From: Magallana gigas
Lineage: Eukaryota
NCBI RefSeq assembly: GCF_963853765.1
Contig: NC_088858.1
Coordinates: 55,118,001 to 55,182,000, forward strand
Reading direction: 5' to 3'
Length of the DNA: 64,000 bases
A program made the position numbers and the translations under genes. Positions within the stretch are counted from its first letter, which is position 1, and each line of letters opens with the position of its first letter. The notes beneath the pieces are model-generated. The model was not told where the DNA came from. It saw only the letters and a program-made list of their open reading frames with translations, and did no database searches. Shown here piece by piece: positions 7,789 to 41,069 of the stretch.

Positions 7789-7916
7789 NNNNNNNNNNNN
7801 NNNNNNNNNNNNNNNNNNNNNNNNNNNNNNNNNNNNNNNNNNNNNNNNNNNNNNNNNNNNNNNNNNNNNNNNNNNNNNNNNNNNNNNNNNNNNNNNNNNN
7901 NNNNNNNNNNNNNNNN
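7789..7916. other. Assembly gap (N run)
   Basis: Run of N. Confidence 1.
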
Positions 7917-8070
7917 TTATGTGAGGATACACTGCATTTTGTAGAAATGTACAAATGTACAAAACTTGCCAGACCTCTGGAAAGGAATTCTTCTGAAAGA
8001 GCATGCGAGCACAGGTATCACTCGGTGGAAATTGAAATTGATTGCAAAAAATGTCATAGATGCATAAAGA
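7917..8070 (-). pseudogene. Relic of a GRL exon 1 fragment
   Basis: LYASMTFFAINFNFHRVIPVLAC matches INASLTIFAINTNFSPVIPVLAC of the GRL at 12504-13493. The nucleotide similarity to ~12890-13000 is visible by eye. Confidence 0.8.
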
Positions 8071-8345: not shown

Positions 8346-10485
8346 CCAGAAACCTTTGAGAGGGTCTGTGAAATAAAATTAATTTCATAACTACCCTTCG
8401 ATATCAAGCTGGATAAGGTGTTTCAGAGCGATTCACATAAAATCGGGGTATATTAGTAGTTTTTTTTCCAGCATGATTTACTGTATATTCCTAATTTTAT
8501 GCAAGTACATAATTCTGCGATTTTACCTTTTGCATTAAATCGTGGGAACAGAAAATCGCAAACGACAAAATGTTATCATAGTTTCATTTAGTTTACATCA
8601 GTTCTAAAAATTAAAACAAAGAATTTTTAACATTTTTTTAATGCATCAAATTCTCGAAATTCAGTTGTTTTACGTAGCAGAGGTGAGTTTCCAAACCATT
8701 AAATTATTTATAGTAAAAAAGCTGTTTTATTACTATTTAAATTTATTTACCTTCAAAGTGACGATACATTCTCATAGAAAAATCGAATGCATTGCTAATG
8801 CAACGTCAAAGTTGATTCTTCAAACAGATCGTATGAAGTACAGACAAGTGACTTTCTTCATATCGCTGTGAAATCAATCGAAAGCCCTAATATACCCGCG
8901 TTTTACACAAACATTTTTTCCATAAACTGGCTTATAAATTTCTATTCCAAAAAAAAAAAATATTTTAATGTAAAACATTTAAATATAATCAGCAAAAAAA
9001 AACATAATATAGGAAATGCAAAAAAATAATTTTCGAGTAAAAATATATTAGATGAGGAATTTTAATATCTTAAATTTCAAGTCAATTTTTGAATGCTTGA
9101 CTTATCAAATTATGTCATTTGTTTTCATTTGTGATTACTGTTTTCTCGACAATATTGATAAACACAGAGATATTCCTCAGAATTTTTTTAAACATTTTGT
9201 GTTGTCATTTAGCAATGAGAATAGGCTGTCTGTATTTGCACATGTACGAGGGGTCAAATGTGAGGGAGATGTGCGGCCATCTTGACATTTGAGAATAAGA
9301 ACGTAAACATTTCATGAAATGGTTTGTTTCTGCCCGAAACTGGCCAAAAACTGTTGCCAAAAGATATAAAAGCAAGTCCTCCATGTCATTGTGTTTGAAA
9401 AGTATGCATACAAGAACTGGACAATGCCTTTTCAATCACTCAAAACAGTTTTCGAACTTATTTTGAAGATTTAAAAATCTAAAAAAAAAAATATGAAGGG
9501 GTTCATTGGTGTCCTCTCTACAACCATTTTTTGAGAAAAAAGTTCGAAAACTTTGCTAATTTAAGTTGTAACTTTGCCTTAAAATGTCGTTATAAAATAG
9601 CTTTTGATAAAAGGTAATGAACAACGATAACAAAGCAAATATGACCACAAACATTGACACTTTATAACAAACTAGAGTCGTTCGTAAACGATATAATTTA
9701 ACTGCATTTCTATAGAACAATAGACACAATTTCAAACTAACCTTTAAACGAATTTCATTCATTTAGTGGTAAAGCGTTATGTTGATTGTTTGCATACCTT
9801 CTAACAGAGTTTTTTCCTCTTAATTGATTCGTTATGCAAGGGCATTTTCTATGGATGAACTATTTCTGATCCTACCTATCATTTTAGTAAAGTTTGCTTT
9901 GCTCCTGTTTTGTATTTTTTCTTTGTACTTTTGATTTTGAACATTGTTCGTTATTACCACATTTCATTATAATGTTGAAAAATATGAAAAGGCATAATTG
10001 CGCTAAAGCAGACATGGAATTAAATACAGACAAAAACAAAATTGTGTCTTAAAGAATTAAATACAGACAAAAACAATATTGTGTCATAAAGATATGATGT
10101 ATATGTGACGGTGTGCAAGTTATTATGCAGCTTACAAAGAAATAGCTTATAAGAATGAACAACATTTCTACTTAATGAAATGTCTAACATTTCTGTTACA
10201 AAATTGGATTAATTGCACCGAAAAGTATTTTCAAAGAAGAAACAAATTATTTTATTATTCATTATTTCTCATTTCGCTCTAAAAGAAAAAACAAAACAAA
10301 CACACGAAAATATATTAAATGAATTATTTTGTGGTTATCTCAAAGATATAGTACCACCGTAAGTCAGGCCATAGGTGAAGTATATACAGTTTTGGTGTCA
10401 TATCCTAGCCCCAAAAAGAACAAAGTAAAAAAAAGTTGACAAAGATATATTAATCTGTTTATTTCAGAAAAAACTTTCGAAATAT

Positions 10486-12412
10486 CTAGATTCGGAATTG
10501 AAGTAGCAGAAAAAAATATGTCACGAACAATCCAGCAAGCTACAATTCAAAAGAAAAGCAGTGACAAAATAAAAGTAAAAAGTATCCTAACACACTGAAT
10601 TTTTTTCTGATGCAAAACAATCCATTTGAATTATTGATTTAGATGCGTATTTGGATTTAAAATTAGATGTTTACTTACCGTAAGAATCATTTCCTTGGTG
10701 ATTGTGATAATACCGAGTACTGACAGACCAATAGACGGACCGTGAAGTTTGGTCATCAACAGGTTCAACTTTTAAACAGTTGTAAAAAATAATGTGAGAT
10801 AAATGAAATAATACACAATTTTGTTTTGACTTATCTATAGCGTCATGACATGATACAAAGTTGAGTTATTTAACTCTTAGATACAGTTATTTTTTCCTTC
10901 CTGAGAATGCCAGTGTTGTTTTGAGAGACAGGAAGGCTTTATCAAGAAAATACACTCGATTTAAAAAACACAAGACACAATTGTATGACGCAAGTATACT
11001 CTTAAGGTCAAGATCAAGTAAATGACAGGTGTCTACCGGTATATGAAATTCAAGATATAAATTCTTTTAATGATGCTTCATAACAATATCTTTGTTTGAT
11101 AGAGTGTATCGGGGCCTAAATTTAAACATACGAAAAATAATATTTTAAATTGTCATTTTCTATGAAATATAAAGGAAATAAGTAACAAATCTCGGACCTT
11201 TGTCCATTTTTGATGATTGTAATATATCTAGAATGCCTACAGTCCAAAATGACTTTGATGAATTTTGTTTCTCCCTTTTAAAATGATGTCAAATGGAATA
11301 AAGGTATCGGGATGACTTTTTCCATGATTTGGTAAAGAGGTCAAGAAACTGTCTTATTTTCTACATTATATACTAAGGTTTCTCCACCCTTAATGTTTTC
11401 ATGGTTTAATCTGTGTAATATTTGTTTAAATTTGAAGATTAATATGTAAACATTCAAACTGAACTTAAATATTTGTATGTTGCAAATATTTTATTTATGC
11501 TGTAGAAGCAAACACCTGTACACTATTAGGGAAATTATAGTGAAAACTGCTTTACAATCGAACATCACATTTTTAAAAACCGATTTCTATTTAATAAAGC
11601 AATTTTTTTAAAGAAATCAATCGTAATCCTTTATTTTATGTATTTTAACAGTTTAGGGCCATTTAAACTTGCCAGTATGTTTAAAACTTTGAAATAATGA
11701 TTCAAACTCACTGAAAATTAGTACATTTGTAATTCATGATAAATACTATCGAAACCTGCAAAGAAATGTTTACCTTGCCATGTAAAAAATTATGAATTGT
11801 AGTCTCAGTCAAGCTTGCCTATGTATGGTTTTATCAGTTTTTTCAATAAATCAGCTATTTTAACTCAAACTACCTTCTATACATTGATAAACATTAGTGT
11901 CATTTCACTTTACATAGCTTAAAATTTGTTAAACACAAATATAAATCAAGAAATATTGGCAAAACCATGCATCACATAACACTTATAACTGATAACGGTA
12001 AAATATTCCGGATTGCTCACAATGACGTCATGCGACAATCGAAAGACCTTAAAAGTACGGGGAAAATATTTATCAAATCAATTATGAAGTCATAATGGTT
12101 CTAGCACCAAAAAGACACTCCGAGATCATTTACTAGATCTTGACTTTAAACAGTTTTCAGATAACAGTGATTATTGCTGATGGTGGAAGTTAATCAAAAA
12201 TGATCATATATCAAAACGACAACGGAAATGTGTTAACAAACAAAACATTTTCAATATATAGTTGTGTTAAAGTATAGTATACCTCTATCATATCATCAAT
12301 ATTGGTATCATTGACATCGATATTAAAGATCTCTTTAGAAAGCCCATGTGCCTGAAAAACCCAAATGGATAGATAGATGGATATATGGTTAAATAGATGA
12401 TTTAATTTATTT

Positions 12413-17300: not shown

Positions 17301-18386
17301 TGCTTGAATTAACAGGTCGAACTGTATTTAATGTATGTTCGCATCTCTTAAGATAAATGAATTGAAATAAAACTGAGTAAAATGTTATAGCTTAAAGTTT
17401 TTATAAGAACTACTTATGCAAGCGGAATGTGTGTGTACGTGGAAGCATTTGCCGGATGCCTCATATGGACACAACAGTGATCGGCCGAAGCCGATCACAA
17501 AAATTATTTCCAATTAATTAATGTGATGTCTTAATCAATCTAAAACTAAAAACAACGCTTTGAAATCATTTTTAGATTTTATTTACTTAAAAGAAAACGT
17601 TTTCAAGTTAAAAAAAAATTTAAAATGTGCAAATGCTTTATGAAACGCTTAAAAACGCATGCATATAATGATATTTATAGCAAGATGAACAATCTGTGTT
17701 TATTTCAAGGAGTATAATACACAAATAAACGCACATGATTTTAACAAGTATTACAATGAATTACTGAACTTTTCCAAAATATAAATATTTTCAAAAATGA
17801 CAAAGTCACAACAGAACATTGTTTAGTACTATATACATGCTTAATTACTTATATCGTGTAAGACTAATGTAAAAAAAAAAATTAATATGCTTGATGTTAC
17901 GTTTGAAGTTTGTAAAATTCAATGTTATTTTAATTGTTAAATGACTGGTTTTTATACAATTAATGGCAAACATCTAAATGATAGGAATTTTATTTCCATA
18001 CTGTGCGGAACTCTTTAGTAAAGCTTGGTTTGAACAATCTGTATACAAATGTATATAAACAGAGTTTGACTATGAGAACAATATAATTATTATAATTTTG
18101 TTGGCTAACTTCATGCTGTTACTATTCTTGATTACGTCATTTATATGTGTCGAATGATTCCTTTTTATCTTGGTGGTGAAATGATGATGCTACAAAAAAA
18201 CAGTTAAAGATATATACTGACGTAAATTCAGCTTAAAATATTTGATTTTTACTTATTTTAATGACTACACCTTTGAAGTAAGAGAATGAAGATAATTACT
18301 ATATAGCTAGTAATAAAATCTAAAAAAAGAAAAAAAAAAAAAAAAAGGTCCGTGTGCCTTAAACCAAGGTATGATAAAATACGTAC

Positions 18387-21300
18387 CTATATTTTAAACT
18401 GAATCAGCAAAAAGAGGTATGTCATGAAAACTCCAGCGAGCTAAAATCAGAGAAGTATTTTTTTTTTCGTGTTTAACCATACTACGTGGCTAGATTAAGT
18501 CATACTGAACAAGAAATTCAATTAAACATACTCAACAAAATATTTTCTATTGTCCGCGCACGTCTTCATATTTCTAGCAAATATTTCACAGCTCTAATTC
18601 ATACTCAATTACAGCATACAATCAATTACATTGATGTCAAGCAACTACGGCATATTGGATTTTAGCTGTTAAAGGAGACTTTCTGTTTGTTTTACAGATG
18701 AAAGCAATAAATTTATGTATTTGTAGGAAAGTGGTTTTACAACATGATCAATTAGAGCACCATTCGTCTATATAGAAAGAGCGCATAGAATGTATGCCAT
18801 TTTAATGCTTTATTATGATATAAACTAAATATGAAACAATTGTGTCTGCTCTTTGCTCATATACATAGGGAAAAAACTAAATTAAAATGAATTTTACCTT
18901 CTTGGTACATGAATGTCTGTTGAATTTTTTTTTCAAATGCTTTTTTTTAAATCTTGTAAATATCCAGCATGCCTTTTTGTATTCACTTTAAAATATTATG
19001 CGACTTACCGTTAGAATCATTTCCTTGGTGATGGTTATAATACCGAGTACTGACAGACCAATGGACGGACCGTGAAGTTTGGCCACCAACAGGTTAATCT
19101 GAATATATAATCCATACACCATTCTCTAATTAAAGTATAAATCTTCGCAATATTGTGTACCCACCTATATTAATATTGTATACCCACCTTTATTTGCTTG
19201 CGAATCAAATGTTACTGCATGTTCTGAATACATTACATTTTAACCACCCACCAGTTTATCTCAACTAAATTTCGAAATGAAAGTGTATATATTTTGTAGA
19301 TATACATGTACTTCCTATATTCTTTATTTTATACCATACTCTTTATATAAAGGATATTTGGATATGTCTGCCAGCAAAATTAATGACAGGAAGCAATGCA
19401 TTTATTGATGTAGGTATACGTAACAAATCTTTAACATATTCACTAAACATTCCTTGTATCTTATCTAATCTTCGCAATTCATACAATATTGCAATATATT
19501 TTAGACATTTAAGTCTATTTAAACAGATTTATATTTTGGTACTCACGTGCGCAAGATCCTGCATTGTAGCTCCGTCCAAATTGACATCCATTATCAACGG
19601 AGAGAGACCATGGGCCTAGAACAGTGAATATTTTAAATCAAATTCTTTATTTTAAATGACATGTATCGCTTTTGCAAATTCCTACTTAAGGTCAGACGCG
19701 ACCTATCTTCCATTTTTTTTCTATCTTTACAATGTGCAATTTAGTAATTCTATAATTATATTTTCATGTTATATGATACTTTTTTATTTAAGCATGACTT
19801 TATTAATAAGCATTTAAATGCATTTTTCATGCTGTTTTACGGAAAATTCTAAATATTCTAGCTCCGAAAATAGCCTGGTAATATACCCTGAATTTTTGGG
19901 AATAAACATTTTTATATGCTAATAAATAAGAAAAAATATATCAAGGAAAATTCTATAAAAATGAGAAACGTCTCATGTGTCCTTAAGATTAATTAAGATT
20001 CGGTGACCACGTAAAGTCAAGGATNNNNNNNNNNNNNNNNNNNNNNNNNNNNNNNNNNNNNNNNNNNNNNNNNNNNNNNNNNNNNNNNNNNNNNNNNNNN
20101 NNNNNNNNNNNNNNNNNNNNNNNNNNNNNNNNNNNNNNNNNNNNNNNNNNNNNNNNNNNNNNAATCTGATTGGTTTAGACGCAGTTAGTAATCTGTTCTA
20201 TTACCCTTAGCGTTAGCAACACACTTGGCAACGGGTAACACTATATAAATAGTGCCTGTTTGGGAGGGTAACAGTTGAAATTGACACCCCGAGAAAACCA
20301 TTGTCAACCGACGCGAAGCGGTGGTTGACAATGGTTTTCGAGGGGTGTCAATTTCAACTGTGATCCTCCCAAACAGACACTATTTATTTTGTTATACTGA
20401 ATGTCTTTTTTAAAATTTTTAAGAAAATCTTACTGCTTTTATATAGGAATAACGTGAATTCTACAGCGAACCGTACGCGCATAATTTTCGCGCATGTAAC
20501 ATTTTTTAATGTTACCCGTTGCCAAGTGCGTTGCTAACGCTGAGGGTAATAGTAAATATTATTAACTGCGTCTTAACCAATCAGATTTCAGTATTTAACA
20601 TGAAAGTATAACAAAACGAATTGTTACATGCGCGTAAATTATGCACGTACGGTTCGCCGTAGAATTCACTTAATTTCTATATAAAAGAAGTAAAATTTTC
20701 CTTACAATGGTTGTCTCGGGGTGTCAATTTCAACAGTTACCCTCATAAACGGGCACTATTTATATTATATATATATCTTTGATTCTTACAAAAAAAAAAT
20801 ACTTATTAAAACACACTTCAGAAAAGTGCAATTAAAAATATGCTGGACAAATTATATTCCTGCTAAGCTAATGAAAACTTTTATTGCGATAAAAAAATCT
20901 TTATATTTATGTGCCGTTTTATTTGGAAGTAAATTAAACAAAACCAAATCTGCTGCAGACATAAATATGAAATGGTATGGAAAACCGTTTGTTCATCGTG
21001 CAATTCAAGCAGAGGGTCGTTTATCTAATTTTTCGAGGATCTTTTGAATTCATTGACTCTCAAACTTTGACAGTTTGTCTCTGCAAACACACGTCTTTTG
21101 TCATTGGGCCAAATAATATGTAATTGAAGTATAGTGACAAAAACCTGCCTGAATTGATTATAACATTCTTAATATCCTAACAAAATCCCTCAATAAGTAA
21201 GTACTTTTCGTGTGTTTCTTCTGTTTATTAAATTCGCGAGTGCTTGGCCATGCGTTAAAATTTATAATGTTCTTGAATTTTTTTAAAAATATATATATTA

Positions 21301-22419
21301 TGGACTACTTATACACAAAAATAAATGAGGTCAGTTAATTTGTTTTGACTGTCCTTTTTAACGAATGGTATCACCTTAAGCAGTGACCAAATTTTAACTT
21401 CTAGAGATATAATTGAGAAAAGATAACTGTACCTTCTCGTGTACATTAGCGGAATTTACAGATGTTATAAAAGGGACCAGAAAACACGCTCCCAGCCAGA
21501 AGGAGGAGATAGCGATCTCTGGTACGTTGGGGGCGTTTGAAATTTCGTGTATCATTTCGTAAATTATAAAACACGCATTTCCGATGTTTAACAGGTAAAC
21601 GTTGGCAATGTAATAACTCAAACTTTGGTCCACAGTTTCCACCATCTTACATAATTTCAAGTGTTTGTATCGAACACACTTCAACGTCTCGAACCTGTTC
21701 GGACAATCTTCTAACGCCGTGTTGTCGATGACGTCATAAAGTTCCTGAAACTGAGTCGCTATGCCACTGGTCAGAGAATAATGAAGAACAGCCGGAAAAA
21801 TCCACACTCCCGTTGAAACGGACATAAATAGACACATAAGTATTTTAACAGCCAATGAATGACAAGAGAGAGGGTTGCACATGACATACGCAAGCTTCGG
21901 AGAAAAGTCGGAAAAAAATAGAAAAATGATAAAACCTGTGTTGAATAGAACTACCATCCAACCAGCTATAGTAGCCCGTATTATATGTCTCTTAACATGT
22001 TCGGTTCTTGGGTTCGTCTTTAATCGTTTCGAAATACTATCTGTGGTTACGTTAATGTACTGCTTTTCATGTCTCTCAAAATGGTTCTTTTGTTCGAAGA
22101 ATACGAACAAAACTAATGAATTCACGGCGTTTTGTATGGTCCAGATTACATTGACGATTCTATGAGCAGTAAGATCTGGGATGAAATCTACTCCGACCCA
22201 GAAGCTAGGTAGGTATCTAATGACACTCAGGCTCATCAAGCAGCAGATGAAGATACAGTAAAATCTGATTGCTTTGGGCAGGATCCGCGGGGGGTTCGTA
22301 TTTTGGTCCCCGGTGTCTTTTGCTGGCTCTACTTGACTGTGCTTCGGTGTGTGGTACAATCCAAAAATGGCTAGAGATAAATACAGCGGCCGCATGTACA
22401 CGCTCCTGGATGTATTCAT
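18387..22419 (-). CDS. Gustatory receptor-like protein 2, 399 aa
   Basis: Exons 22419-21433 (329 aa), 19615-19547 (AHGLSPLIMDVNLDGATMQDLAH), 19098-19009 (INLLVAKLHGPSIGLSVLGIITITKEMILT) and 18440-18387 (LAGVFMTYLFLLIQFKI*). Same phase-0 structure as GRL1. Intron 1 spans the N gap. Confidence 0.88.
19690..19982. mobile_element. Non-autonomous TTAA-inserting DNA transposon (Kolobok-like termini GG...CC)
   Basis: TTAA|GGTCAGACGCG...CGTCTCATGTGTCC|TTAA; imperfect TIR. Confidence 0.5.
20025..20162. other. Assembly gap (N run)
   Basis: Run of N. Confidence 1.
20163..20770. mobile_element. Foldback/MITE-like palindromic element plus a partial second copy
   Basis: Outer inverted arms at 20163-20240 and 20510-20588; inner ~140-bp hairpin at 20245-20387. 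Rearranged pieces recur at ~20610-20770. Confidence 0.8.
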
Positions 22420-23833
22420 ATTTAGAGTTGCTTGAGAAGTTGTTAACGGTATTCAAAGTTTAACGAGAAATGTAGATGTGGCATCAAAGACAAATTCTAG
22501 GAACGCGTAATGGCTGGTCATTTGTGTCTTCTAAAGAACCAGGAGAAAATGTGCTTAAATGGGTCCCAGGTGAAAGAGACAAAGCGTTACCAATTAAGCT
22601 CATGAAATGATTAACGATTTATTAAAGATGTCCAATTGTTTGTTCTAACTATCATAACAGTTTAAAGTAGATTCCTAGTATTTACCAAGCCATCCACATC
22701 TTTATTGCATTTGTCATATATTCTATTGATTGTTGTGCATGAATATCCATCAAAGGATTGGAGAACAAGAACGGACAACTTCAATTTATTGACCAAGTTG
22801 TGCAAATTCACTAATTTCATATTTCAAACAACATTGTGAAACTCTTTCAAACGTAATACAATCCAACGTGATTTAAACTTTTGCATCGGTCAATTTAACT
22901 CTGGATCGGTGAGTATAGCGTTGATAATGTCCTGGAATAGATGGGTCAATTATTACGTGTATCTACCGACAAAGAAAATAACGTTCTACCAACCAAATGC
23001 AGAGTCACTTGGTTTTTCTGAATAGTTGCAAAAGGCTAAAGTTCAATGCAGGTAGTACATGTGATCTAGGCCAATGATGCAATATCGCGTTCTTACATGG
23101 TTTCAAGATCGGAAATGCCCTCACAGGGTCTGAGTTAAAAATAGATAAAAATAAGAGCACATGCGTATATATCTTATATATTGCATCAAACTCTAGGTCT
23201 GTCATCATTTTATGCAATGTTGGGAGAAGATTTTTCCAACAAATTAACGTCAAGATCTAGTACATGGAAGACGTCCTCATACATACCGTAGATTCATTGT
23301 TTTACGCGAGTACTTAATTCCGCGCTTCAAATGAATTGCATCAAATTGTGAGTATTTAAAATCGCCAAGTAGTTTTTAGTTTCAATTAGTTTACATCTAT
23401 CGGAAAGACAAAAGTGAGATTTTAAATACGTGATATATGCTTCTCGCGATTTTACGCGGATATTAATTCCTCACAATTAATTAGGTATCACCAGTAATTC
23501 TTTAAGTGATGCTTCATTGCATTAGTTTTGTTTGATAAGGTGTATCGGATCTTGATATTTTGGAAAACACAATATAATAAGCATGTTTGAACTGTCATTT
23601 TCAAGGAATATGAAAAAGAAAAAAGTAACAATCCTGGAGTTTTGCCCATTTTTGAATGAAATATATCTTAATAACTGCTCACATATCTCAAGAAATGGTA
23701 TCAAACAAGCTCCAAACCTTAACTTTAAAATGATATAAATGGGATAAAGTTAAATATAGGCATCAAGATAACTTTGATGAAACTATAAGATTTAATATTG
23801 AATTCAACTAATTACAACGAAATTGTTAACAGT

Positions 23834-23835
<2 letters not shown>

Positions 23836-23894
<59 letters not shown>

Positions 23895-23914
23895 TGTGTG
23901 TGTGTGTGTGTGTG
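23836..23914. repeat. Compound (GA)n(GT)n microsatellite just inside the GRL3 intron
   Basis: Reads (CA)n(CT)n on the sense (minus) strand, starting ~20 nt from the donor at 23933. Confidence 0.98.
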
Positions 23915-23933
23915 TTTTAAAAAGAACTGTTAC

Positions 23934-24920
23934 CTTTTCGTGCACTTTCGCAGATTTTATGGAGATAATAAATGGTATGATAAAAGAACTCGCCAGCCAG
24001 AATAATGACACAACCATCTGTGTTATGTTTGGATCACCGCTCACTTTACTAATCAGGTCATAGATTAAAAAGCACGCAGTTCCAATACTTAACAGATAAA
24101 CGTTTGCCACATAGTAGCTCAAACTTTGGTCCACAGTTTCCACCATCTTACATAATTGCAAGTGTTTGTATCGAACACACTTCAACGTCTCGAACCTGTT
24201 CGGACAGTCTTCTAACGCTGTGTTTTCAATGACTTCGTGAAGTTCCTGAAATCGTATCTCGATAGCAGTGGTTAACGAATAATGGAGAACCACTGGGAAA
24301 ACCCACACACCCGATACAAGCAAAAAGAGAACGGATATGAATATCTTCACAGGAATAGATTTGTGAGACAGAGGGTTACATAGGGTCACTGTCACATCGG
24401 GCGTCAGGTTCGAGAAAAGCAGACAACCAACTGTCACGGCATTGAAGATGACCATAATCCACCCGACCACCAGAGCTCGGACCATGCTTCTTTTGGCTTT
24501 CTGACATGCTGGGTTGGTTTTTAGATACTTTGAAATGTCGTCACTTATCACCGTGATGTACTGTTGGACATAACGCTCAAAATGATTCTTGTTCTCGAAG
24601 AAAACGAAGAGAACAATACAGTTGACGGCGTTTTCTATGAACCAGACAAGAACCACGATTCTTAGTGCGGTGGGGTGCGGGACAAAATCGATCCCCACCC
24701 AGAAGCTTGGGATGTAACGGAGAACGTTCAGACTTAAAACACAGCAAACAAAGAGGCAGTAAACTTTCTTCACTTTTGACAGTAAGTGTGGAGGTTTGCT
24801 ATTTGCTTTGGCATCAAAAGCTTTAGCGGGTTCAACAAGGCTTGAATTCGATCCATGCGATAATCCAAACAACGCAAGTGACGTATGCAGCGGCCGCATG
24901 TGAGTTCTCATGGATGCCAT
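23934..24920 (-). CDS. Gustatory receptor-like exon 1 (GRL3, 329 aa) without its own 3' exons
   Basis: Intact ORF MASMRTHMRPL...SAKVHEK, the same length as GRL2 exon 1, ending at a canonical donor AAG|GTAACA. The ORF track's start at 24998 is probably too far upstream. I found no exon 2-4 homologues in 22420-23933. Confidence 0.85.
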
Positions 24921-26163
24921 GTTAATTCTTCGACTTTCAATTGTTCGCAAAAAACCCAACTTTTTGAGAGGTGTAAAACCCAAACACCTAAATGACAAAT
25001 CGAAGTAAATCCTTCAGGAAATTGTTTTCTTCCCTCACAAAGTTTCGGTGGTAATATTAATAATAGTTTTTTTTTTTCTGCAACATGCAGATATTAACCC
25101 TTTGTGATGCTCCGCTGATCTATCCGAGTAATTCCCAGTCCGTTTTTTAGCAAATACAATAATGTTATGTCAATCGTGGATATTTACAAAGCAAATGAGA
25201 TGTAAAGATCTGTTTCCATCCCGTTAATTGATTTACGGTAATGGTGGTAGAAACCAATGTCCTTTTATAATAAAACACTGCGGTTCGGCTACAGTGCCAA
25301 CTTTATAAAGGCAAACAAACCAGTAATATTTACTGGTTCACTTTCCAAAGACATCAAATCGCCAGATTAATAGATACATCTAATGTCGTTAAAATCCTGC
25401 CGGTCTTCTCCTGCGTTTTTGATCCCTGTTACGTAATTACTGCCCTGACGTTTTGGAAACCTTACATATTGGGAAAAAACTCGTCCCTGCTTGACAGACC
25501 AAATAAGCTTGACGTGATAAAAGATCGGAACGGTGCCGAATGATGTTCCATGGCGTTCTGGGGCTATCACAATTATCAATCCACATTAACCAAATTAATT
25601 ATTTCATCGCTACTTTGAGGCACTCATACTGTTATCTATCCGTTCTTGCTTTATTTGTCTGTCACAAAAACTTAATGGCAGCTCTTAATTAGAACTTGGA
25701 CACACTTCTCGTAATGACTTCTTTCACAATTCCCAGAGCAGATTGTCGTGTATCTTGCATTATATTAACATTAAACTCATTTAAAGAGGGGGTAACTTTA
25801 CTTCATGCACTGTAAAATATTCCGATCTATATAGGATTTAAAGTTCAATATTCTCTTGCAGTGTCTTAATTACGAATATAAACTAATGAGCTTGGCGCGT
25901 ACACTACGCGTTTCAATAAGAAAACTGTACACATCCAATGTATAAACTTAAGCACCATTCACTGTCAGATGTGTTGTATCTTTTCCAGACCTGAAATAGA
26001 AAATATAAAGTTACAGCTCACCACGCAGTGTCATTTTATTCTGCTAAGACGGGTCAACAAGTATTTTATTTAAAATAAATAGCGAATTAACTGTACATAG
26101 TGTGTAACTTCAGAAATTAATTAGACTTCTACATCGCCGCACCACACCTTAGAAAAAGCTGCA

Positions 26164-26290: not shown

Positions 26291-27011
26291 TTGAATACGT
26301 TTATTCTAGGGGCGAGAGTGGTAAACAAGATTTCCCCGTGGCTCTCCTGAGCCAATACTCGAGGTCAACTCAAGATTAATTGGTCCATTTTTCTCAAGTG
26401 ACTTAATTGGTCATCCTATCATTTGAATACCAGGGGGAGGGAGGAGGGCTGAAAAACGTCTGGGAGGGGGTTCCCAGGCTTGCATCGGGTGTGACCGATC
26501 CAGATACTATTGCACGTATCGGTTTGTCACTCCACCTGTCAGTTCATTAAGGGCTGCATTATCTATACTTGGTAAGATATAAGCTAGTCATTGACATTTT
26601 GACTCTTTGAAAAAAATAAGGATTCTGCATGACTTGTTATAGTTACCAAAAATATTTTTAGGGGGTGAGGTGGGTGGATGTAACATCCCACCCCCTAACC
26701 TTAACAATAAATTCCTAAAGAGTCTTAGACACAATTATCTTGTTTATCTTAAGTTTGTGTATTCAAATGAATTCAAATGGATTGGTTGGAGGAGTTTATT
26801 GCACCTGACAGAATGTTTATAAAACAACCAAATAATGAATACCTCTAACATTAAAAAGTATTCTGATACATGAACATAAAACTTCTACCATGTAAATCTT
26901 ACACAAGCCACATGCATCAAATTCCACTTCATTTTAGTGAGTTTTATAACAAACAAAGAATCACAAGGTAAATAAGCTTCTAAATAACATAACAATACTC
27001 ATGATAAATTA

Positions 27012-27229
27012 CTGTAGGTTCCTAATTAAACACCAGGAATTAATTTCCGCATAAAACCGCAAGAAGCACCTGTCGCGGATTTTAAAATCTCGCCATTATT
27101 TTCTAAGAGTTAGGAACTATAAGAAATGAAGAGCAATGTTCCACGTTCGCAATTCTATATTCTGGCAAATTGATACAAACCAGTGGGTTTCGCGTAATTA
27201 AGTACTCGCGTAATATAAGGAATTTACAG
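27012..27229. mobile_element. TA-flanked Tc1/mariner-type MITE family A (other copies 34210-34449, 39881-40094)
   Basis: TA|CTGTA(G/A)(A/G)TTCCTAATT...AGGAATTTACAG|TA. The TA TSD is clean in the 34210 copy; internal sequence is shared. Confidence 0.75.
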
Positions 27230-28046
27230 GAATTAAATGATAAATCCATCATAATAAGGCAAGATATTAAGATCAAGATCTAGAAAATGAGAGATGCCTA
27301 CAGGTTTATGAATTTCAGGACATAATTTCTTTCAAATATGCTTCATAACAACAGCTTTTTTCGATAGGGTGTGCCGGGACTTCAATTTCTGGTTTACACA
27401 ATGAAAAAATCATGTTTTTAACATTCTATTTCTGTATAACATGAAGGAAAATAGTAACAAATCTTAGAGTATGGCCATTTTAGACTAATTAAATACATCT
27501 AGAATGCCTACATTCTAGAATGTCTCTTGATAAACAATTTTAAACGAGCTTTTGACCTCCTCATTAAAGTGATGTAATATTCAATATAGGTATCAGGTAT
27601 CATAAACTTTTCAGTGATTTAATAAAGAATCTGAAGAAACTGTTAAATATTCTACATACATGTAATTCCTTTACAGCCGTTAAGTATAGAAATTTTTTTT
27701 ATCAAATCAATTATGATGTCAAAATGGTTCTTGCACCAAAAAGACACTCTGGAATCATTTACTAGATCTTGACCTTAATTAATGTCCAAAGTAACAATGT
27801 TTTGTTGAGTTAATTTATAACCTAATAAGAAAACAAGAAATCTAAATAAATGATACAAAACACAGGCACAGTACATGTAATAAAGCAATAATGGCCACCT
27901 TTGGGGCATTGGATAATAAAAACATGTATCACATAATCATGACATTGTCCATTATGGTTCTATGAAAAAATACAATTCACAATTGCGCAGAGTATAACAA
28001 TATAATAAAAAAAGATACAGTCAAGTCTTTTGCCAGTTTCCTCTTT

Positions 28047-33400: not shown

Positions 33401-36400
33401 TAGCCATGTTTTGAAGTACATGTAAATGATTTAGGAGCAGATATCAGATTCAGGCGGTCAGGCAATAGTAGTGTCTTTTGGTGACCAAAAAGGGGCACAG
33501 CAGTGGCTAGTAGAGACCTCCTGTCCATTCCCCATGCTCCTGGACTCACAGAGAAAGGTAGAGAAGTTCTGAATGATTAATTAACATATGTTAGTAAGGA
33601 CCTTCTTTTTATAAGGATTATAATCTGTAGAAGCTATTTAACAAGACCAGGGAATTTTGGTAGCCTAAGGATGTAACTATCTTTTTCTTGCGCCAAAGCA
33701 AGTTAAAAATAACTCTGGTTTCAAGTGAAATATACACAGATTATGTAGTCTTTTAAAATTAGCTCAAAAGCTAGCCGAATCATGTTAATTTCAAAGAGCA
33801 ATGGCTGAGTGGCCAGCAATGAAATAGACAGGCCTACATCACAATGCTGTTTGACACAACTATCCAAAGTCCAAGCTCCTGTTAAAATGGTTCTAATTTG
33901 TTACTGGTTCTCGGTTGGAACAATAATGGCAGTTTGTACCATCATTGAACAGTTAAAATATGTCTGTGAATTTTAACACAGTTTTTAGACCTTGTTTCCA
34001 TTCCTTTAGACATAATTTTAAGGTTTGCAATATGTCAGTTATGTACATGTATGTTTTAACTTGTTACTAGGTGTATACTGCATTTGGTTTGCATCGTTCT
34101 GTCAGCAAAGTAAGTATGCCTCATTATTTTCTATCATTGCCTCAAGTCTCTTCATAATTTTATAGAAGTACAAAAGAGGCCTAAATAAGACTTTGTTCCA
34201 GCATGCATACTGTAAATTCCTAATTCTAAAACGTGAGGAATTATTAATATTATCCGTGTAAAATTGCGAGAAGCACCCTTCGCAGATTTTAAAATCTCGC
34301 CATTATTTTTTGAGAGTTGAAAACAATAAGAAATAAAGAAAGAAGTTCTGCGTTTGCAATTTTATATTCTCCCGATTTGATACAAAATAGCAGGATCGCA
34401 GAATTAAATACATGTAGGTCCCTACTTGCGTAATGTAAGGAATTTACAGTAGTTTACTGGTTCATTCCTGTGAGAATATTCTAAAGCTTTGACCACAATT
34501 AATTCACCTTCAAGTTGGTGGAAAATATCTATTATAATATATGTCCTCAATTTATGTTTAATTAAAATAATTGCTTGGCATTATTGTTTGATAAACATTT
34601 ATACTGAACAGGTTTGGGGAGTAGAAGAGATGGTTTACTATGCAGAGTCAATGGCCAAGAACATTCCGTTACCCAAACCCTCTCAGTACGTCAATGATGA
34701 CCCGCAGCAGGTAGATTAATTTAAGTCCTGGAGATCAAGCCCAAGGTTTCTTCATCCAGTCACAAATTAAATATCTAAGATATTTGTATTCTTATTTTTT
34801 CTCAGATGGGTGGAGATTTCATCATTGACAAAGATGGAGTTGTACAATACATGTACTGTAGTAAGAAGTCCATGGATAGACCGTCTGTACAAGATATTAT
34901 AGACAATTTGAAGGTATGCAGTGTCTGTCTTAACTGTAATCTCCTGTTTGTAGAGTTTAATCAGTAAGGGCCTAAGGGGGACTATACTATTGTTTTATGC
35001 ATAGATAATGCACTGACAATCTACATCATTCTTTGTGTGGCGATTGATTGATTATAATTTAGATTAAGTCCAGCGTAAAACATGCTTTTTTTTAATTTGC
35101 CAAACCACCCCCTTCTTACTTTGAGGCTGAGTATCAGAGAACCTTAAGTTATTAATATTAACACTTTCTAATAAACAATGTACTGTACACAGGGTTATCC
35201 CCCCCACCCCCATGTGTATGTGCTGCTACTTTACACTTGCAAAAGGTTTCACCCTCACACAGTTTTGTGGTAGATACTTACTCTTTCTTTTTAACACAGT
35301 AATTAAAACTTGTTTTGAATTTGCTCAGTCTTTAAAAGGCCTGCGAATGATAGCATATATTGTTTAGCCGCCTAACTAAAAGTCATTTTTTTGAAAGTTG
35401 TCTAATTAAAGTTATTTTTTTATAATAATGTAAACATTTATGTATATTTTCATTAAATATAAATGATTTGGTCAAACAAAGAGAGAAAACTTTTTATTTT
35501 GGGTTAAAATAGCGAATTTCATAATAGAAAATAACGGAAAACAGAAATGTTTTTTAAAACATCTCCAACCCCTCCCCCCCACCGGGAAACAAATATTCCT
35601 TTTGAGGGGTTTTAATTATTGTTATTTAGCATATTTTTACCAAAGGGTTTGTTATTTCACGGGGGGAAACATATGTCTACAGACCGAAATACATTCCAAA
35701 AAAAGAATTTTGCTTTGTAAATTTGTGAAAAATAATTAACAGATATGAATTAAATGACAGAACTATATATGATATGAGTTGAATTTTGCCCCCATAATTC
35801 GCCATTTTTAAAGTGTTTCGGGTATATTAAAATATTATGTTATTTTTTAGTCTAGAGGAGTTGATATTAAATATATTTTTCACCGATTTATTTGCACTCA
35901 TTTGCAGCATATGACGTCAGAAGTGACGCTTTTTCTATAATTCAATCAAAATCAGTCAAAAATTGACATTTTTCTTACCTTTAAACGAATGGGAAATATA
36001 GAGCGCATGCTTGAACAAGGAAAATTTGTATGTCAGTTATTAGTCTTGGCTGGTTACATCTCTGATTAAAATATGTTGTTTGTTCAAGCGTGCGCTCTAT
36101 GTTTTTTGAAAGAAAAACTGCTTGAAAACAAGCTGTTTTATGCTAAAAATGCATAAATGGCGGGAAAAGACTGTCTTCATGATACCATATTTCTAAATTG
36201 TGGGCACTTGAATCAAAATGAACATAATGTATAAACATCACATATATATCTGTACAAAGAAAACAAAGATTTACAGTAAAATGATGATGTTCATTTTAGG
36301 GGGCCATTTTAGGCCCTTATCATATATAGTCCTTTACTTTAATATATACCGGGTAATTATATGTTATTAAGTTTTTATGCACATATTGGCTGCTAAATGA

Positions 36401-39200: not shown

Positions 39201-41069
39201 GGTTTACTACACATTTTAGTTCTAACATTACAATTTACTCACTTCTATTTTGACTTTTGCGTGCTTGGAAGTTTGTAAAAAATCTATATATAAAGTTAAA
39301 ATGTGCTGAACAATTAATTTCATTGCTGTTTAAACAAAAACTAATTGTAAAACTGTGAGCAAATACCTGTTTTACATTTTGCTCCCCAAAAAATAATGAT
39401 ACAAGTATAAAGAAAATGATAAAGTTAAACAGATACTGATTAATTAAAGCACCATCACCATAACACAATACTTGTCATCTGATTAGGGACTATAGGATGG
39501 ATCTTAGAACTTGTAGACAAGTAAACAATTACCCGGTAGTATTATTCTTTGTTTAGTTCACATGTACTCAAACTTTTCAGGATAAACGTCAGTGTTCACA
39601 CTTTCTCAGTATGCTTCAACAAACATAAAAGTAATACATATGTAAACTGAAAGTACTAACAAAATACACAAAAATGTACAAAAATAAAAATGGATTTCAT
39701 AACAATCACTAACACATGACAAAGCACCATCAATATAAAGTCACCCACGTCAGAGTATTACGTGTACATAGTCAATACATAAAGTTTATCGAAATTGCAC
39801 CTAGGTAACTTACTCCAGACTTGTACTTCAACTACTGTATGTAAATATTAAAGAAACATACATGTTTGCTACAATGAATACGGTAGATTCCTAATTAAAA
39901 GCCAGGAATTAATATCCACATAAAATTGCTAGAACCACATCTCGTGGATTTTAAATTCTTGCTTTTATTTTTCAGACAGATTTGAACTAAACGTCTCTTT
40001 GATAAAAATTTGGCATACATAATTTCATATTCTCACGATTTGATTCAAAATGGTTGATGGGATAAAGTACTTGGGTAAAATGAGGAATCTACTGTACTCT
40101 ACCACGTCCAGTATCTACCGTAGTTCAATAAACAATTTGTTTCATAGAGTACCGGTAATTACTACAAGTCTAGTTTTTAACATCTAAGTCCTTAACAATG
40201 TGATTAAATAGAAAGATAAATAAACAGAGATTCTTCTCTCAATCTCACAATCCATATACTTGTTCTCCTGTTCATGAAAGTGTCCACACTGATAGAAAAG
40301 ACCAATGACATAAAGTTCATTCATTCGCTGAGTTCTGAACTCAAAATCTGTGAGGATAATCTTCTGTTGCAGACTTTGGTGATAACCTACTGATCTATCT
40401 CACAGGTAATTTAACCATCACTGCTATTAAGTCCAGATTTACAAATATAATGAAGATGGTATCATCCATATACAACCATTCATATTTCTAATTCAAAACT
40501 CCAGTAACCAGTTTCCATCAAATCTTTTGAATCTTTTTTCTACAAAATCAGAAGTTTTTTTTAAGATGAATAGTTCATATTATCACACATCGGTTAAAAT
40601 GTTTCAAAGTAAAATTTTATGAGGTAAAACTTTATTTTTTTTATTAAAATTCAAAACTATCCACTCTCAGAAAATGTTAATCGAAATTTTGAAACCAATA
40701 TCATGACCAATTTTGATTTCAACATGCTGTGATTTCTACTTCTGGAGTATGTATCCTAACAAGAGGCTCTGCTATTCAATGTAACCTGACATTAAGACCA
40801 ATCGCAAGGGAGACATTGATGCATGAATGAGAAGTTGGGATTGCAACCGTTTTAAAGCTGCTTGGTCTGATTTCACTAAACTACCAATATAAAAACACCC
40901 CTCCCCATGCTCAAAAACCACAGACCCAGGGTTCATAAAATACATCAGTGCTATGTACTCGGGTTGACAACTTGATGCCTAGGGGTAGAGAAGAAAACTT
41001 TTGAAGAATAAATACCACTGTTAGTAAGAAAATATTTCTTAAATAATATCATTTCACCTTTGACATGTT

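Follow-up and report, generated by a model that had tools for sequence, protein, structure and literature searches.

The DNA analyzed here is a stretch of 64,000 nucleotides (nt) from the oyster Magallana gigas (NCBI RefSeq assembly GCF_963853765.1, contig NC_088858.1, positions 55,118,001 to 55,182,000), referred to as the window; all coordinates are those of the window. It includes, at 18054-25562 on the minus strand, a single gene of the gustatory-receptor-like (GRL) branch, LOC105338147, in which two large alternative first exons, termed GRL3 and GRL2, are located upstream of one set of small exons. Spliced transcripts join GRL3 exon 1 to the small exons lying behind GRL2 exon 1, and the latter is skipped. 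Very probably, the gene gives rise to two productive isoforms, one of the GRL3 type and one of the GRL2 type. Its exons are the following:

23934-25562, minus strand: GRL3-type alternative first exon; coding sequence 24920-23934, 329 codons, transmembrane segments (TM) 1-6; defined by its open reading frame (ORF), its donor and transcript contig L001.
21433-22717, minus strand: GRL2-type alternative first exon; coding sequence 22419-21433, 329 codons, TM1-6; lying within the intron that the GRL3 isoform removes.
19547-19615, minus strand: shared exon 2; 23 codons, phase 0; end of TM6, loop and start of TM7a.
19009-19098, minus strand: shared exon 3; 30 codons, phase 0; TM7a and the turn that leads into TM7b.
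18387-18440, minus strand: shared exon 4; 17 codons and the stop; TM7b, with the motif T-Y-LFLLI-Q-F.
18054-18192, minus strand: shared exon 5, 3′ untranslated region (3′UTR); true start at 18189-18192, a TAG being common to it and to the end of exon 4.

Searching proteins with GRL3 exon 1 as query yielded one of 399 amino acids (aa; P0001) that is encoded on a 1,979-nt Logan contig (L001). This RNA contig aligns with the window in five blocks (25562-23933, 19617-19547, 19101-19009, 18440-18387 and 18192-18054), with an identity of 98.1% in exon 1 and of 95.8% in the 3′UTR exon. It is a processed transcript, in which GRL3 exon 1 is followed by the exons located behind GRL2 and GRL2 exon 1 is skipped. 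The same joins are present in three contigs (L005, L007 and L008) obtained from several runs of a sister species about 10% diverged in DNA. In the spliced RNA contigs exon 1 abuts exon 2 with nothing in between, and spliced full-length transcripts of 392-399 aa are many, coming from several studies and from two species. The stitched translation of the GRL3 type matches exactly isoform X1 of LOC105338147 (XP_011441440.3). An earlier note on this DNA had predicted a splice path from GRL3 exon 1 to 19615/19098/18440 that bypasses GRL2 exon 1, and L001, the three contigs of the sister species and RefSeq isoform X1 all show this path.

The window contains three intact first exons of about 330 codons, all on the minus strand; the third one belongs to a neighboring paralogue, GRL1, the translation of which matches exactly XP_011441449.4:

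10486-13493, minus strand: GRL1 (LOC105338156), complete neighboring paralogue with its own exons 1-4.
13493-12504, minus strand: GRL1 exon 1; 330 codons, donor aag/GTCATT (the slash marks the splice site).
12351-12283, 10768-10679 and 10539-10486, minus strand: GRL1 small exons, the second set of exons 2-4.

All three first exons end in HEK and continue into a phase-0 GT donor (cac gaa aag/GTAACA in GRL3, cac gag aag/GTACAG in GRL2), and neither GRL3 nor GRL2 exon 1 has an acceptor before its own ATG. The 5′UTR of GRL3 is colinear with the genome to at least 25562, that is, over at least 640 uninterrupted nucleotides (L001), and contig coverage extends that of GRL2 at least to about 22660-22717. 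The GRL3 donor is separated from the GRL2 ATG by a spacer of 1,514 nt, free of N. Both sets of small exons are in phase 0 and have AG/GT sites, and shared exon 3 is 90% identical to exon 3 of GRL1. The count of three intact first exons and only two sets of exons 2-4 had been given in the earlier note, with coordinates that proved to be correct to the base.

TM1-6 of the two receptors encoded by LOC105338147 are 58% identical, and exons 2-4 are identical in isoforms X1 and X2. The ratio of non-synonymous to synonymous substitution rates (dN/dS) is 0.16 for GRL3 exon 1 compared with the sister species, and 0.16 as well for GRL2 compared with GRL3 exon 1. Between alleles, the ratio is 0.21-0.22 for either exon: a second GRL2 allele (L011) shows 9 synonymous and 7 non-synonymous changes (ratio 0.21), and the GRL3 alleles give about the same figures. 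GRL3 exon 1 is under purifying selection.

With respect to the 3′ end of the gene, exon 4 carries a GT donor directly after its stop codon (TAG/GTACGT), and exon 5 continues to about 17698 according to a contig of the sister species. Splicing from exon 3 to exon 5, which skips exon 4, is found in older RefSeq isoforms of 421 aa that are devoid of TM7b and of the TYxxxxxQF motif. When exon 4 is skipped, exon 5 (18189-18073, minus strand) is translated in frame. These 421-aa forms are probably non-functional.

The evidence that the GRL2-type isoform is also made is of a different kind. The stitched GRL2-type translation matches exactly isoform X2 of LOC105338147 (XP_065943279.1), and independent annotations of this isoform exist for M. 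gigas (in two releases) and for Crassostrea angulata. The RNA contigs of four runs (X1, X3, X6 and X8) were mapped to positions 19500-25450. Around GRL2, contigs of run X1 lie on 21432-22717 only, that is, on the exon and about 300 nt upstream of it, and depth is zero at 20893-21290 and 22883-23280. There is no piece below 21432, and the mean of the 21291-21489 bin fits coverage of 21432-21489 only. One contig of this run ends exactly at 21432, the last base common to the intron and exon 2. Such a stop is the pattern expected of a de Bruijn graph when the GRL2 donor site is used. As coverage in run X1 begins at about 22717-22880, a separate transcription start approximately 250-450 nt upstream of the GRL2 ATG is suggested.

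Several observations weigh against the existence of two productive isoforms. No RNA contig joining GRL2 exon 1 to exon 2 (the 21433/19615 joint) was found. When the C-terminal half of isoform X2 was used as query, only a GRL1 fragment and a further protein (P0059, described below) were retrieved, and no spliced fragment of the GRL2 type; the exact GRL2 junction pattern had no match in the JGI metagenome contigs. The contigs that reach the 3′ end of GRL2 exon 1 (L011 and P0039) continue into the intron; L011, colinear over 23091-21094, is probably genomic DNA. High-copy repeats (20160-20770 and 23280-23490) swamped the joints, and neither of the two joints from a first exon to 19615 was among those listed. 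The depth of GRL2 exon 1 is lower than that of GRL3 in runs X1 and X3, similar in run X6, and about that of the intron in runs X3 and X8; in run X8 it is higher than that of GRL3 exon 1, which is only partly covered there. A gigas-like contig (L017) shows a 1-nt deletion in a T run, possibly an error, and the GRL2-type exon of a related species (87% DNA identity) carries in three samples (L018-L020) a frameshifting deletion of 58 nt. In addition, transcription starts are bounded by contig ends only.

These points would fit a gene with the GRL3 isoform as its one functional product, GRL2 exon 1 being a duplicated, decaying exon stranded in the intron and seen mainly in pre-mRNA, and isoform X2 a model only; the lack of a GRL2-type exon in Crassostrea virginica (see below) points in the same direction. 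We nevertheless consider this explanation unlikely. The 329-codon ORF of GRL2 is intact, and its 58% identity to GRL3, its dN/dS of 0.16 and the ratio of 0.21 between alleles argue against decay, as do the coverage of run X1, confined to the exon and its upstream flank and stopping at the donor base, the independent annotation of isoform X2, and the match of the full X2 protein to the 7tm_7 profile end to end with 66 bits. The reading with two productive isoforms is therefore maintained as by far the better one. One of the contigs mentioned above, P0039 (Logan, 1,308 nt), is a chimera made of the N-terminal part of GRL3 and the C-terminal part of GRL2, with the switch inside the conversion tract described below. 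It is a warning that short-read transcript assemblies can mix both isoforms.

Another explanation is that GRL3 exons 2-4 do exist and were collapsed, lost or hidden in a gap of the assembly, the spliced contigs deriving from that copy. Two features could be invoked for it: L001 matches the 3′UTR exon less well than exon 1, and the repeat-rich intron contains a gap:

20025-20162, no strand: assembly gap in the shared intron, downstream of the GRL2 donor (21432) and upstream of the acceptor of exon 2 (19616).

Located downstream of GRL2 exon 1, the gap is in the wrong place for a private 3′ set of GRL3. It crosses no reading frame and has no coding consequence. The interval from the GRL3 donor to GRL2 exon 1 contains no N, and neither there (22420-23933) nor elsewhere in the window did tblastn (word size 2, E up to 20) find a third copy of exons 2, 3 or 4, as the earlier note had stated for the interval between both first exons. 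The same note had left room for private GRL3 3′ exons that it might have missed; a search of the complete assembly (564 Mb) in six frames revealed none, giving three copies of exon 1 and two of exon 3, all in this window. Besides, the junctions of the spliced contigs hold no extra sequence, and the C. angulata genome, assembled and annotated separately, shows the same X1/X2 pair at LOC128168891, with the same design. An assembly artefact is hence most improbable. The third explanation, that GRL3 exon 1 is an orphan 5′ exon left by a dead partial duplication, would account for its having no 3′ exons of its own, but it is refuted by the full-length spliced transcripts (L001 and L005 among them). 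The dN/dS of 0.16 also speaks against it, as does the fact that GRL3 is the copy orthologous to the single first exon of C. virginica, (CT)n microsatellite included; the earlier note had likewise argued against it.

A segment of the spacer, 23496-23668, resembles 11060-11229 in intron 2 of GRL1, and was considered as a candidate relic of a lost private intron 2. This candidate was rejected upon finding a copy at 27327-27500, outside the GRL genes: as the same element is present there, beside a second dispersed repeat, the segment is a transposon fragment.

We propose the following mechanism. The two first exons would be mutually exclusive. Each has a 5′UTR, a start codon and a phase-0 GT donor, and with its roughly 329 codons encodes TM1-6, which make up most of the subunit and face the ligand; the first acceptor downstream of both is that of exon 2 (19615). 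If transcription started upstream of GRL3, the GRL3 donor would be used and GRL2 exon 1 would be lost within a 4.3-kb intron, yielding isoform X1; if it started within the 1.5-kb spacer, the GRL2 donor would be used, yielding isoform X2. In both cases exons 2-4 would supply TM7a and TM7b, the latter being the presumed pore-lining helix, and exon 5 the 3′UTR. The splice from GRL2 to exon 2, the separate promoters, the choice between them and the channel function of the products are parts of this scheme that we infer.

To which protein family the products belong is indicated by the Pfam profile 7tm_7 (PF08395, cut-off 26.6 bits). Each first exon alone scores 26.6-36.7 bits; the full isoforms reach 64.4 (X1) and 66.3 bits (X2), covering the profile from position 18 or 2 to position 368 of 370, so that the addition of exons 2-4 lifts the score from 33/37 to 64/66 bits. 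An AlphaFold2 (AF2) model was built on 41 diverse molluscan homologues, a previous alignment of 13 sequences having given a predicted local distance difference test score (pLDDT) of 49 and been discarded. The model has a pLDDT of 85.6 and a predicted template modeling score (pTM) of 0.85. When it was compared with the PDB by Foldseek, the top 24 matches were all chains of insect Gr43a, Gr64a, BmGr9, Orco and odorant receptors (ORs), each with a probability of 1.00; template modeling scores (TM-scores) normalized by query length were 0.56-0.77 for ranks 1-22, and 0.58 and 0.50 for ranks 23 and 24, and the next match had a probability of 0.18. A profile search of the PDB sequences gave nothing, the link to insect receptors coming through the fold search only. 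The protein is thus predicted to adopt the seven-transmembrane ion-channel fold of insect gustatory receptors (GRs) and ORs, with TM7 split into TM7a and TM7b.

In the solved insect channels (Orco and GR structures), TM7b lines the pore. In the AF2 model, the boundary of exon 1 (residues 1-329) falls where TM6 ends, and exons 2-4 (residues 330-399) correspond to TM7a and TM7b; placed in this way, the model agrees with the layout proposed in the earlier note, a variable TM1-6 part on a constant pore segment. The signature TYhhhhhQF, which marks the C-terminal TM7 of the family (PMC11730519), is present in exon 4 (M-T-Y-L-F-L-L-I-Q-F-K-I) as well as in GRL1 (T-Y-F-F-L-L-L-Q-F).

We turn now to the origin of the design. 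The orthologous gene of C. virginica (LOC111131177, L002) has one first exon and an intron 1 of 1.67 kb, in which no second first exon (GRL2 type) was found; its first exon is the orthologue of GRL3, even the (CT)n microsatellite after the donor being common to both. The orthologous locus of Saccostrea echinata (L003) holds a tandem pair of complete genes, both of which have their own exons 1-4. No sharing of 3′ exons is seen at the remaining GRL loci of M. gigas (C7:1.92 Mb and C9:1.81/1.82 Mb), and the C9 pair consists of complete tandem genes. The GRL family of M. gigas is small, the searches by which its copies were located giving six first exons. The shared design is either confined to this locus and the Magallana lineage, or has been lost elsewhere.

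In a protein tree, GRL2, GRL3 and the C. virginica sequence form a trichotomy. A nucleotide tree computed without the conversion tract gives weakly (GRL2,(GRL3,Cvir)), with a support of 85/80, and synonymous sites are saturated. The trees do not decide whether the exon was duplicated before or after the split from C. virginica. The tract left out of the nucleotide tree is the following:

24118-24251, minus strand: gene-conversion tract on the GRL3 side; GRL2 partner 21617-21750; 126 of 134 nt identical.

Its core of 89 nt contains a single mismatch, and elsewhere the DNA identity between both first exons is 57%. C. virginica differs within the tract at many synonymous sites. The near-identity of the 134 nt in both exons, with C. 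virginica differing there, indicates gene conversion between the two first exons. The 58-nt deletion of the related species maps at about 21794-21741, just upstream of the tract (L018-L020 aligned to 22662-21666); its interpretation as an intron was rejected, as it does not have GT-AG ends.

Since neither the C. virginica nor the Saccostrea orthologous locus has the design, we regard it as independent of the insect cases. It probably arose independently and recently in oysters by duplication of the first exon within intron 1 of a four-exon GRL gene, the result being a small birth-and-death array with conversion between its exons and with the younger-looking exon broken in a relative.

Several side observations concern first exons. 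At 7956-8063, on the minus strand, lies a relic of a GRL1-like first exon, of 109 nt and 75% DNA identity (16 of 22 residues), which covers only residues 162-183. It is a remnant of a fourth copy, now dead, which a second assembly gap (7789-7916) either cuts or hides. A protein of the gastropod Batillaria attramentaria (P0065, KAK7491008.1, 1,448 aa) contains at least two exon-1-like units in series with no TM7 exons in between, and may be either a mis-fused gene model or another array of first exons. A microsatellite begins less than 20 nt (10-17 nt) past the donor of exon 1 in GRL3 ((CA)n(CT)n, 23922-23835), in GRL1 ((CTAT)n, 12497-12415) and in the C. virginica orthologue ((CT)n, L002, just past 10987), and GRL2 does not have such a microsatellite. 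These repeats may be there by chance or may influence the use of the donor.

A further RNA contig (L004, encoding P0059) joins a block of 760 nt located upstream of GRL3 (27043-26284, minus strand) and one or two tiny exons (25992-25958) to 19615, skipping both large first exons. It contains only an ORF of 122 aa, which ends in TM7, and the donor of its small exon differs from the allele of the window. The contig could represent an upstream leader, a third promoter or read-through from TMEM160, the transcripts of which end near 27750. TMEM160 itself (30407-27750, minus strand; four exons according to contigs L022-L025) lies, as in C. virginica, directly upstream of the GRL gene, with which it shares its orientation.

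The right flank of the assembly gap lies in a nest of inverted repeats (20163-20766). As depth there is in the thousands in the contigs of the RNA runs, these repeats are a high-copy element. A second high-copy dispersed intronic repeat is located at 23281-23499, both repeats having depths of hundreds to thousands; further copies of the intronic repeats are found at 27007-27227, 34208-34411, 39886-40096 and 8479-8599.

The model of a gene with two first exons is already public through RefSeq in two oyster species. In the old UniProt model K1Q8W0 (780 aa), TMEM160 has been wrongly joined with both GRL first exons and with parts of GRL1. Our literature search retrieved no paper that describes this locus or any alternatively spliced GRL of a mollusc; Robertson 2015 (Chem Senses 40:609), reportedly a survey that includes C. 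gigas GRLs, was outside the reach of the search and may mention the locus. According to the earlier note, the design is not known to have been described in molluscs, and this holds for the literature searched, but not for the databases, given that both isoforms are in RefSeq. What is new here is the absence of the design at the C. virginica and Saccostrea loci, the 134-nt conversion tract and the 58-nt deletion in a relative.

Of most interest is that the design probably arose independently and recently in oysters. A few insect Gr genes are textbook examples of large first exons that alternate in front of common TM7 exons, and this transcript-backed bivalve case takes the Gr39a/Gr28b design beyond arthropods. 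Its absence in two other oysters provides a natural, dated example of how such a locus begins. If the origin is indeed independent, the old GR gene structure, with a long TM1-6 exon and three short phase-0 TM7 exons, would repeatedly favor the same diversification of the ligand region, in molluscs as well as in insects. Isoforms X1 and X2, with an identical pore helix and TM1-6 parts that are 58% identical, are also a clean experimental pair for mapping ligand specificity in the little-studied molluscan GRLs. The practical weight is limited, the isoforms being in RefSeq and the family small.

Variable first exons are well known from other gene systems. In the clustered protocadherins and in UGT1A, each of them has its own promoter and donor and is spliced to common constant exons; the unchosen downstream variable exons, which lack an acceptor, are removed as intron, and promoter choice is documented. 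The oyster gene differs from them in that the proteins are unrelated, their arrays are far larger, and promoter choice is in the oyster only inferred. Closer at hand are the whole-gene tandem duplicates of GRLs (the S. echinata L003 pair, the M. gigas C9 pair and GRL1), which belong to the same subfamily and have four coding exons and phase-0 introns. In these, each first exon has its own exons 2-4, whereas LOC105338147 has two first exons and one set.

The closest likeness is to Drosophila Gr39a, and also to Gr28b and Gr23a. In Gr39a, several large exons, each coding for six TM domains and provided with a GT donor, precede three small exons common to all of them, which encode TM7 and the C-terminus, and the first AG acceptor lies where the block of small exons begins; the locus evolves by exon duplication, pseudogenization and loss under overall purifying selection (PMC2204066). 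The oyster gene likewise consists of a large exon followed by three small phase-0 coding exons, with birth and death of exons among relatives. The oyster gene has only two alternative exons, whereas Gr28b has five and Gr39a four or five. Unlike Gr39a and Gr28b, the oyster host is a lophotrochozoan GRL and not an arthropod Gr, it has an extra 3′UTR exon, and a conversion tract links its first exons. That the variable/constant design of Gr39a and Gr28b is present in a bivalve was the central proposal of the earlier note; spliced transcripts argue for it on the GRL3 side, and annotation together with indirect read evidence on the GRL2 side, and LOC105338147 is supported as a molluscan example of the Gr39a/Gr28b design.

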